Under the pieces are notes generated by a model that saw nothing but the letters and a program-made list of their open reading frames with translations, did not search any database and was not told where the DNA came from. The position numbers and the translations under genes are program-made. This document shows positions 49,995 through 52,675 of a DNA stretch of 64,000 nucleotides, piece after piece; within the stretch, counting starts at the first letter, position 1, and every line of letters begins with the position of its first letter. This stretch comes from Pseudomonas aeruginosa PAO1. GTDB lineage: Bacteria > Pseudomonadota > Gammaproteobacteria > Pseudomonadales > Pseudomonadaceae. The DNA is taken from the NCBI RefSeq assembly GCF_000006765.1, contig NC_002516.2; one strand, written 5' to 3'.

Positions 49995-50458
49995 GCGCGA
50001 ACCTGCACGGCCTGGAGTTCCCCGACGGGCTGTTCTACGCCCCGGACTACAACCTGTGGTTGCGCGAGGAAGTCGACGGCAGCCTGACCCTGGGCCTGAG
50101 CGCCTACGGCTGCGCGCTGTATGGCGAAATCTTCGCCTTCACCCCCAAGCGCGACGGCTGGCACATCGAACGCGACCGCAGCTTCGGCGTGGTCGAGTTC
50201 GCCAAGGCTGCCTCCTCGGCCCGCAGCCCGTTGGCCGGGACCCTGCTGGCGAGCAACCCGGCGGTGGTCAAGCGCCCGGCGCTGATCAACCGGGATTGCT
50301 ACGGCGAGGGCTGGATGGTACGGCTGCAACCGGACGACTGGGCCTCGGCGCGGAGCGCGTTTCTCCAGGGAGACGCGGCGCGGGAGGCATTCGCCGAGCG
50401 CATGCGCCTGGATGGGTTCGATCCGCAGCATCCAGGGGTGCAGGCACTGGACTTCTGA
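49991..50458 (+). CDS. Glycine-cleavage H-like lipoyl-carrier protein
   Basis: GVVEFAKAAS (lipoyl Lys), SPLAG and LINRDCYGEGW motifs. Confidence 0.87.
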   Translation: MSANLHGLEFPDGLFYAPDYNLWLREEVDGSLTLGLSAYGCALYGEIFAFTPKRDGWHIERDRSFGVVEFAKAASSARSPLAGTLLASNPAVVKRPALINRDCYGEGWMVRLQPDDWASARSAFLQGDAAREAFAERMRLDGFDPQHPGVQALDF

Positions 50459-50493
50459 GACTCCCGGGTTTTACCCGCACCCCGCTCGCGGAA

Positions 50494-50520
50494 GGCGGAT
50501 AACGCCGCTGGCGTTATTCG
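50494..50520 (-). repeat. 3' portion of a REP split by the IS insertion
   Basis: Minus strand CGAATAACGCCAGCGGCGTTATCCGCC; the missing 5' part GGTAGGGC lies at 51899-51892. Confidence 0.9.
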
Positions 50521-50577
50521 TATATGGACTCCTCCCGGTTTGCCAGTGTTTGTCTTGATTTCAAACCTGTGTACGAC

Positions 50578-50729
50578 TGCATCCGTATATCCGGCTTCAT
50601 GGAGTGGTGTTGCAACTCCCGAGCCCTGATGAAATGCGCGCCTGCATACCTGATCGCCCTAACGGCTTTGCTTCACTGCAGCAGGGAGCCCACGTATAAA
50701 CCAGGTTTCATGCAGGCCGGTTCGACCGG
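50578..50729 (-). ncRNA. Predicted bridge/seek guide RNA core in the IS 3' non-coding end (exact ends unknown)
   Basis: 5' hairpin plus two stem-internal-loop modules carrying target matches (TTATACG, TAGGGCGA) and donor matches (CATTTCAT, ATATAC). Confidence 0.75.
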
Positions 50730-50795
50730 TTCGTCATCATTGTCATTCACTGAGCAATCGTGGTGGATGTTTCAACTACGGTGTGGCAGGAACGC

Positions 50796-51812
50796 TCAAC
50801 CGGGCCGGTAGCATGTCTCCCGGCTGAGTAAAGCCCAAAGGATCCGGGCATTCTTGTTGGCCAGGGCAACGGCGACGACATTGGCAGGACGCCGTTGCAG
50901 CAGACCTTGCAGCCAGCGGCTGCGGGCATCGGTCTTGTTGGCGCAACAGCGCACGACTGCACGGGCGCCATGGATGAGCAAGGTCCGCAAGTAGGTATCG
51001 CCGCGCTTGCTGATGTTGCCCAAGCGCTGCTGCCCGCCCGTGGAGTGCTGCCGTGGCACCAGGCCCAGCCAGGCCGCAAACTGGCGGCCCGTGCGGAATT
51101 GCCGTGCATCACCGGCGGATGCCGCCACCGCGCTGGCGCTGATCGGGCCGATGCCTTCCACCGCCAGCAGGCGCTGGATGCGGGCATCGCCACGTACGTG
51201 AGCCTGAATCTGTCGCTCCAGTCGAGCGATGCGCGCCTCCAGCGTCTGCAATTCATCTTTCAATTCACGCAACAGCTCGCCCATCGGGGCCGGCAAGGGC
51301 GCCGGCTCGGTAGCCATGACCGTTTCGAGCAAGGCCATCGTCGCCGCTCGCCCACGTCGAGTCGCGATCAGCCCGAACTCACCCAGCAAGCCACGCACCT
51401 CATTGCACAACGCCGTGCGGGCCCGCACTAGACGACTGCGCACCCGATGCATCGACTGCACGGCCTGCTGCTCTGCGCTCTTCACCGGGACATAGCGCAT
51501 GCTCGGACGACTGGCGGCTTCGCAGATCGCCTCGGCGTCGTGTGCATCGTGCTTGTCACCCTTGACGTAGGGTTTTACGAACTGCGGTGCGATCAGGCGT
51601 ACCGTGTGGCCCAGCTCCCGCAACTCGCGCGCCCAGTAGTGCGCACTGCCGCAGGCCTCCATCGCCACCAGGCACGGCGGCAGTTGGCGAAAGAAATCCC
51701 GCACCTGTGCCCGCTTGAGTTGGCGACGACATACCACATGCTCGTGACGATCAACGCCGTGCACCTGGAATACTTGTTTTGCCAGATCCAGACCAATGCG
51801 ACTAAGGTTCAT
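50796..51812 (-). CDS. IS110/IS1111-family DEDD transposase/recombinase (338 aa)
   Basis: GLDLAK (D), AMEACG (E), KHDAHDA (D,D), GIGPISA HhH and GLVPRQHSTGG (catalytic Ser loop); purine-rich RBS before ATG 51812. Confidence 0.96.
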   Translation of the reverse strand: MNLSRIGLDLAKQVFQVHGVDRHEHVVCRRQLKRAQVRDFFRQLPPCLVAMEACGSAHYWARELRELGHTVRLIAPQFVKPYVKGDKHDAHDAEAICEAASRPSMRYVPVKSAEQQAVQSMHRVRSRLVRARTALCNEVRGLLGEFGLIATRRGRAATMALLETVMATEPAPLPAPMGELLRELKDELQTLEARIARLERQIQAHVRGDARIQRLLAVEGIGPISASAVAASAGDARQFRTGRQFAAWLGLVPRQHSTGGQQRLGNISKRGDTYLRTLLIHGARAVVRCCANKTDARSRWLQGLLQRRPANVVAVALANKNARILWALLSRETCYRPG

Positions 51813-51946
51813 GCTGACTCCCCCTCCGGGACTTGTGGCTGCACCATTAGTCTGGCGCTTGACGCCGTAGGAGGGAGGAGTCCATTTCATTGCCCTACCC
51901 CAGCTCTCCATCGCCGCCAATCTCCCGCATATCCCCGGAGTCCGCC

Positions 51947-52675
51947 ATGTCCTCACCCCAACCGCCCCGCTTCGACGGCCAACGCTGGAGCAACGCCGAC
52001 GACGACCGCATCGAGGTGCTGCCTGCCGACCCCGCCTGGCCACAACACTTCGCCGCCGAAGCCGAGGCCATCCGCACGGCGCTGGCGCTGCCCGGGCTGG
52101 GCATCGAGCATGTCGGCAGCACCGCGGTGCCCGGGCTCGACGCCAAGCCGATCATCGACATCCTCCTGCTGCCGCCGCCCGGCCACGATCCGCAGCGGCT
52201 GGTAGCCCCGCTGGAGGGCCTCGGCTACCAGTTCTGGCGCGAGAACCCGAACACCCAGCGGATGTTCTTCGTCAAAGGCATGCCGCCCTTCGGCCATGGC
52301 CGCACCCACCATGTCCATGTCATGCCCCTGGCCCAGGCCGACCGCTACCTGCTGTTCCGCGACTGGCTGCGCAACCACCCCGACGACGCCCGCCTCTACG
52401 CCGAAACCAAGCACGCCCTGGCCCGCCGCTACCCCACCGACCGCGAGGCCTATACCCGTGGCAAGGACGAGGTCGTCGCAAGGATTCTCGGCCGGGCGCT
52501 GGCGGCGACGCGGCACCCAATGATACAGAGTGGCCTGGTAAGGGGAGAACGCGAAATGCACGCCAGGGAACTGCGTGAAACGCTGGTCGCCGGCGCGGAA
52601 TCGACGCCAGGCGGCCCCGCCGATACAGCCTATTTCGAGTCGCTGCGCAGCCGGGTAAGCAAGCCCCAGGACTGA
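51947..52675 (+). CDS. GrpB-family protein with a ParD-like C-terminal tail
   Basis: IEHVGSTAVPGLDAKPIIDI, HHVHV, FRDWLR and YTRGK motifs. Confidence 0.88.
   Translation: MSSPQPPRFDGQRWSNADDDRIEVLPADPAWPQHFAAEAEAIRTALALPGLGIEHVGSTAVPGLDAKPIIDILLLPPPGHDPQRLVAPLEGLGYQFWRENPNTQRMFFVKGMPPFGHGRTHHVHVMPLAQADRYLLFRDWLRNHPDDARLYAETKHALARRYPTDREAYTRGKDEVVARILGRALAATRHPMIQSGLVRGEREMHARELRETLVAGAESTPGGPADTAYFESLRSRVSKPQD

Follow-up and report, generated by a model that had tools for sequence, protein, structure and literature searches.

The bases at 50521-50546 of the window, by which we mean the whole 64,000-nucleotide stretch of Pseudomonas aeruginosa PAO1 DNA analysed here, raise the question of whether a mobile element carries one half of a promoter at each of its ends and assembles the whole when those ends are joined in a circle. 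The bases in question form the right end of ISPa11, an insertion sequence of P. aeruginosa that has been well studied. We consider it likely that a hybrid promoter (Pjunc) is rebuilt at the junction of the ISPa11 circle, where it would drive the recombinase and its guide RNA, and that it is split again on integration into a REP sequence. By sequence, the joining of the two ends creates a promoter-like site facing the recombinase gene, which is a known trait of the family and not a new finding.

The element is complete, lies on the minus strand and belongs to the IS1111 group of the IS110 family (Table 1). It interrupts a REP sequence and has a GCV_H-like gene and a GrpB gene as neighbours. Its transposase is identical at 338/338 amino acids to the published ISPa11 protein (PMC11187229 supplement; Siddiquee et al. 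2024) and contains two Pfam domains, an N-terminal, RuvC-like DEDD_Tnp_IS110 domain (PF01548, 2e-16) and a C-terminal Transposase_20 domain (PF02371, 9e-25). The 275-nt region 3' of the gene could be aligned to the 'NCR and IS ends' entry for ISPa11 in Supplementary Table 1 of PMC11187229, with 3 mismatches and 2 single-base gaps, few differences that are possibly extraction errors, the reference for this alignment of the NCR and right end having been text extracted from a PDF. The published right end terminates in ...GTCCATATA (PMC11187229).

Several traits of the IS1111 group are present. The long non-coding region lies 3' of the transposase gene (275 nt, as against 80 nt on the 5' side), insertion is site-specific and orientation-specific without target duplication, and perfect 13-bp subterminal inverted repeats are followed outward by extensions of 7 bp on the left (CAATGAA) and 3 bp on the right (ATA). 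The rule for the group is subterminal inverted repeats of 11-13 bp with a left extension of 7 bp (or 6 bp) and a right extension of 3 bp (PMC11187229). Comparison with the named ISPa11 of PAO1 revealed the same transposase, right end, NCR and REP target (GTAGGG/CGAATAAC, the slash marking the insertion point), the same lack of target duplication and no difference, the locus being the one between the GCV_H-like and GrpB genes. A megablast search of the element against plasmids returned just an 8% match, to another IS110 transposase, and a literature search for expression of PA4797 gave no useful result. A 95-aa open reading frame on the plus strand (50524-50811) was dismissed as a spurious gene; it lies antisense to the element's non-coding region and lacks support.

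On the minus strand 50546-50521 reads CTGGCAAACCGGGAGGAGTCCATATA, with CTGGCA at 50546-50541, and the left end, descending from 51892, reads CAATGAAATGGACTCC. The perfect 13-bp repeat ATGGACTCCTCCC occurs at 51885-51873 (minus) and at 50524-50536 (plus), and the window contains no other mismatch-free copy of it. In strains that have the same GrpB gene without the insertion, the GCV_H-like gene and GrpB are separated by a spacer of 116 bp, and the window from which 50521-51892 (or 50520-51891) has been removed equals one such empty intergenic site, L094, base for base. The element is therefore 1372 bp long and made no duplication; the 1-bp ambiguity of the boundary leaves the joined-end sequence unchanged. 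The same protein is encoded six times in CP047067.1, a PAO1-like sequence of 6.26 Mb, and all six copies share their ends, from CAATGAAATGG... to ...GTCCATATA. Outside them only the REP halves are shared, the left one being GTAGGG and the right one CG[A/C/G]ATAAC..., in keeping with the earlier description of ISPa11 in PAO1, where 6/6 copies occupy one REP position without direct repeats (PMC1525189).

REP sequences (GGCGGATAACGCCnnnGGCGTTATTCGCCCTAC) were also seen paired or clustered beside several ISPa11 copies (window 50494-50520 and the flanks of L001 and L004). Resident copies therefore have intact potential targets no more than about 100 bp away.

Table 1. Coordinates in the window of ISPa11, its terminal features and the two parts of its target.
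Feature	Position	Strand	Basis or remark
Complete ISPa11	50521..51892	-	Joined flanks equal the L094 empty site; six copies with identical ends; 50520-51891 equally possible
-35-like hexamer CTGGCA, right end	50541..50546	-	Sequence; kept in relatives
Alternative -35 register TGGCAA	50540-50545	-	17-nt spacer; counterpart of TTGCAA in relatives
Right subterminal inverted repeat GGGAGGAGTCCAT	50524..50536	-	Inside the promoter spacer
Right terminal extension ATA, 3 bp	50521..50523	-	Final TA is the first two bases of the junction -10
Left terminal extension CAATGAA, 7 bp	51886..51892	-	First four bases CAAT complete the -10 TACAAT
Left subterminal inverted repeat ATGGACTCCTCCC	51873..51885	-	Repeat search
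Transposase/recombinase gene, 338 aa	50796..51812	-	DEDD_Tnp_IS110 and Transposase_20
3' non-coding region, seekRNA/bridge RNA	50537..50795	-	PMC11187229 maps the 96-nt ISPa11 seekRNA 3' of tnp
Right part of the split REP target, CGAATAACGCCAGCGGCGTTATCCGCC in IS orientation	50494..50520	-	Six-copy comparison; empty site
Left part of the split REP target, GTAGGG in IS orientation	51893..51898	-	Six-copy comparison; empty site

When the ends are abutted, the sequence becomes ...CTGGCA aaccgggaggagtccata TACAAT gaaatggactcc, or, written with full flanks, ...ACACTGGCAAACCGGGAGGAGTCCATA TACAAT GAAATGGACTCC...; the circle junction is thus ...GTCCATATA joined to CAATGAAATGGAC..., and the predicted junction of the ISPa11 circle reads ...CCATATACAATGAA... 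/ ...GGAGTCCATATACAATGAAATGGACTCC.... A preliminary description of this DNA had proposed that joining right end to left end yields CTGGCA, an 18-nt spacer and TACAAT, and this is what emerges from ends that are fixed by the L094 empty site and the six copies. CTGGCA agrees with TTGACA at 4/6 positions and TACAAT with TATAAT at 5/6, A2 and T6 being matched, so that 9/12 hexamer positions agree together. The -35-like hexamer lies 19-24 nt inside the right end, and the spacer to the -10 is 18 nt, or 17 nt in the neighbouring register. The -10 takes its TA from the right end and its CAAT from the left end, which upholds the further proposal that TACAAT exists only in the circle: being split over both ends, it is absent from the integrated copy.

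We scanned both strands of the circular element, and also the integrated region 50300-52200, for sigma70-like -35/-10 pairs under the criteria of the scan tool, which include a spacing rule. In circular ISPa11 the junction site was the sole site to pass on either strand. The integrated region 50300-52200 contained no passing site (0.5 expected in shuffled sequence), and a native promoter sought in the 80-nt left end and left flank was likewise not found, the best -10-like hexamer there being GGCAAT, which lacks T1 and A2. The ISPa11 site therefore combines the features of a junction promoter: its -35 lies in one end, its -10 is completed by the other, it faces the transposase gene and it is missing when the element is integrated. 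The -35 is nevertheless predicted to be weak, as CTGGCA lacks the first T and needs the 18-nt spacer, and the 17-nt register reaches only 3/6.

When one genome per species was scanned for related elements, 80 loci were found whose transposases are 48-80% identical to that of ISPa11; of these, 51 distinct relatives were kept, with both inverted repeats (ATGGAC.../...GTCCAT) anchored and the 7/3 extension rule applied. At the position of the junction -10, TACAAT occurs in 23/51 and TATAAT in 20/51 (together 43/51). Most relatives have TTGCAA, CTTGCA, TTGGCA or CTGGCA 16-18 nt 5' of this -10, and one (L048) has a perfect TTGACA. The distance of the hexamer is fixed, and right-end sequence further 5' of it is not conserved. 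Under the full promoter criteria the junction passes in 27/51 relatives, the right end with its own flank in 1 and the flank with the left end in 0. The commonest form has TTGCAA and a spacer of 17 nt; in ISPa11 and the elements closest to it a G stands for the second T, and because of this replacement (CTGGCA-18, or TGGCAA-17 with 3/6) the ISPa11 promoter is probably weaker than those of its relatives. About 20 relatives, mostly of an Acidobacteria clade (L038, L044, L050-L066, L072), carry TTGCAT only 14 nt from a perfect TATAAT and failed the spacing rule; relatives of this clade also have longer, 16-bp inverted repeats. In them, either the -35 lies elsewhere or the junction promoter works without a canonical -35.

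An ISPa11 circle was reportedly sequenced by Partridge and Hall in 2003. Among relatives, abutted ends could be found directly, since a junction-spanning search pattern, GTCCATATAYAATGNNATGGAC, matched two metagenome contigs, L102 and L101. The first is 1540 bp long (1-1540) and has an exact 127-bp terminal redundancy, with a period of 1413 bp and the junction TTGCAA-17-TACAAT; it represents a circular assembly path, which requires reads across the junction. In the second (892-2726), the last 446 bp of an element stand head to tail with a full copy, at a junction that reads TTTACA-17-TACAAT. Both encode transposases about 50% identical to that of ISPa11, and they show circles or tandem copies of relatives, not of ISPa11 itself, with exactly the predicted junction. 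The statement, made in the preliminary description, that IS1111 and IS110 elements form circles with junction promoters agrees with the literature (PMC11187229, PMC12288879, bioRxiv 10.1101/2024.01.24.577089). Circles with abutted ends form in the family, and the junction promoter proved active in a few cases (PMC11187229); the same paper, citing Partridge and Hall 2003, gives circles of ISPa11 as shown earlier.

The site had further been said to point into the transposase and a downstream guide region, and it does so, as the region carries the published seekRNA (PMC11187229). The ISPa11 transposase was purified with bound RNA that maps 3' of the stop codon and has a main species of 96 nt, in which the match to the top strand of the REP target lies 5' of the match to its bottom strand (PMC11187229). 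In the window, UAGGGCGA (50661-50654, minus) is identical to the top strand of the target over the insertion point, and UAUACG (50698-50693, minus) is able to base-pair with CGnATA of the top strand, on the right-hand side of that point, with one mismatch, which in our reading of the sequences appears to coincide with the single REP position that varies among the six insertion sites. For the donor, CAUUUCAU (50636-50629, minus) is complementary to left-end ATGAAATG, and AUAUAC (50590-50585, minus) has the same sequence as the right end followed by the adjoining base. When the region is folded at minimum energy, UAUACG and UAGGGCGA are opposed across one internal loop, and CAUUUCAU and AUAUAC flank a second structured region; the fold of the guide region is not stabler than those of shuffled sequences (z = -0.9). 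An Rfam search of 50300-52200 (E up to 1) returned no family, no curated model having matched the guide RNA.

Among the relatives L011-L090 the target-copying segment, the counterpart of UAGGGCG, varies with the flanks and keeps a similar distance from the stop codon; examples are TAGCC/CG, TAATC/CGA, TGACC/TG, GGTAC/TG and CTTTGT/TG. Such tracking of the flanks appears to be natural guide reprogramming, in a comparison of guide and flank that was used qualitatively, its control (the targets of other elements) being weak, with related elements sharing targets.

The guide has a bearing on how the conserved ends should be read. Conservation of the -10 bases is not due to a promoter alone, because they are also the donor site read by the guide (AUAUAC, CAUUUCAU). 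It could be argued from this that the ends are conserved wholly for recombination, through the donor loop of the guide and contacts with the recombinase, that the sigma70 likeness is a weak by-product, and that, as in ISPpu9, most expression of the gene comes from a promoter of the integrated copy that is weak or not of the sigma70 type. The exact match of AUAUAC and CAUUUCAU to the junction bases accords with this argument, as do the native promoter of ISPpu9, which has no hybrid promoter, and the ISPa11 -35 itself, which is just 4/6 and has an 18-nt spacer. We nonetheless judge it unlikely. Pairing with a programmable guide would not by itself keep ATA/YAAT constant while inverted repeats and targets differ, and the -35-like hexamer lies outside both the inverted repeat and the guide-matched segments and varies only among -35-like forms (TTGACA in L048). 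No sigma70-like site is present in the 80-nt left end or the rest of the linear element. Activity is reported for the corresponding junction promoters of ISEc11 and ISPpu10.

A promoter-like site with only 9/12 matching hexamer positions could also be a meaningless chance match, given that such sites occur about 0.5 times per 1.9 kb of shuffled sequence on both strands. What makes this extremely improbable is the place: in first-order Markov simulations a correctly oriented site spanning the junction arose in 0.29% of cases with the composition of the whole IS and in 0.96% with that of the ends, that is, in 0.3-1% at this one place and orientation, and the arrangement is seen again in 27/51 relatives, compared with 1 and 0 for the two linear contexts. 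The same two linear contexts bear on a further explanation. Other insertion sequences activate their neighbours through outward-facing -35 hexamers, and the ISPa11 hexamer faces outward over the right end, so it might build hybrid promoters with flanking DNA and activate neighbouring host genes when integrated, and not act in the circle. However, the integrated flanks supply TATACG or ACGAAT at the -10, neither of which passes, a right-end context passed in only 1 relative, and the GCV_H-like gene, the next one past the right end, lies on the opposite strand and converges on the element. This explanation is, in our view, highly unlikely.

A promoter rebuilt at the junction of the circle has counterparts in characterized systems. 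ISPa11 shares several traits with Pjunc of ISEc11: the -35 is situated in the right end, immediately internal to the subterminal inverted repeat (CTTGCAA in ISEc11, CTGGCAA in ISPa11), the right end terminates in ...CATATA, left-end bases complete the -10, and the site faces the transposase gene and downstream guide region. The two differ in that ISPa11 has a G for the second T of TTGCAA, and in that activity has been reported for the ISEc11 junction (Prosseda et al. 2006, as cited in PMC11187229), whereas we found no such report for ISPa11 in the literature. IS621, IS492 and ISPpu10 likewise have a hybrid sigma70 promoter over the right-left junction of the circle that drives guide RNA and recombinase, and activity has been reported for that of ISPpu10. 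In IS621, a member of the IS110 group, the junction-spanning promoter drives the bridge RNA (bioRxiv 10.1101/2024.01.24.577089) and the guide lies 5' of the gene, directly behind the promoter. The ISPa11 guide, in contrast, lies 3' of the gene and must therefore be released from the 3' portion of a long transcript. Like ISPa11, ISPpu9 of Pseudomonas putida KT2440 belongs to the IS110 family, targets REP sequences and forms circles. Translation of ISPpu9 is limited by a structured 5' leader, and a comparable fold is predicted for ISPa11; ISPpu9 has a native promoter and no hybrid junction promoter, whereas ISPa11 presents the opposite pattern in silico. The ISPa11 junction site is thus a restatement of known biology for a named and studied element.

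We propose the following course of events. In the excised circle the ends would abut and place the right-end -35 18 nt (or 17 nt) 5' of the new -10 TACAAT. From the usual 7-nt distance, the transcript would start near 51882, and transcription from Pjunc would cross the 80-nt left end, the transposase gene and then the 275-nt seekRNA/bridge RNA region. RNA polymerase would presumably use the junction site in P. aeruginosa, producing recombinase and guide region as one RNA from which the guide would be cut out; as one transcript would cover both, recombinase and guide would therefore rise together in the circle. Insertion into a REP would then leave the -35 and -10 1.37 kb apart and turn expression down.

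Translation may modify this outcome. The predicted leader of the transposase mRNA (51790-51886, minus) folds with -38.1 kcal/mol (z = -2.4), and in this fold the ribosome-binding site GGAGGGGGAGUC (51827-51816) is paired with GACUCCUCCCUCC (51883-51871), the left inverted repeat as copied into RNA. The predicted structure would mask translation initiation and so damp the translation of any transcript, including one derived from the junction; with the ribosome-binding site paired, more transcript need not give proportionally more protein. A speculative extension, which we regard as possible but doubtful, is that the left inverted repeat doubles as a recombination mark and a mask of the ribosome-binding site, that the circle raises guide RNA beyond recombinase, and that the weak CTGGCA of the Pseudomonas clade tunes the ratio of guide to enzyme and is not a simple on-switch.

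The preliminary description had concluded that recombinase and guide RNA are switched on only after excision. Structure and direction of the promoter hold, but 'only' is too strong and cannot be literal, as the element cannot be excised without its transposase and guide RNA. Formation of ISEc11 circles needs the guide-encoding non-coding region, so the integrated copy must already be expressed at some basal level, and chromosomal copies of IS621 express their bridge RNA at a low level, excision being performed by the same complex (PMC13626964). The defensible wording is that expression would be boosted after excision.

Together, these observations confirm, in the case of ISPa11, the textbook feedback loop of IS110 and IS1111 elements, in which a promoter is split by integration and rebuilt in the circle, so that transposase and guide RNA are confined to the intermediate of transposition. 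The survey also shows that the -10 (TACAAT or TATAAT, composed of 2 right-end and 4 left-end bases) is nearly universal in the clade and that the place of the -35 is fixed just inside the inverted repeat. Both features can be of use in delimiting poorly annotated IS1111 elements and in picking natural promoters for bridge-recombinase tools.
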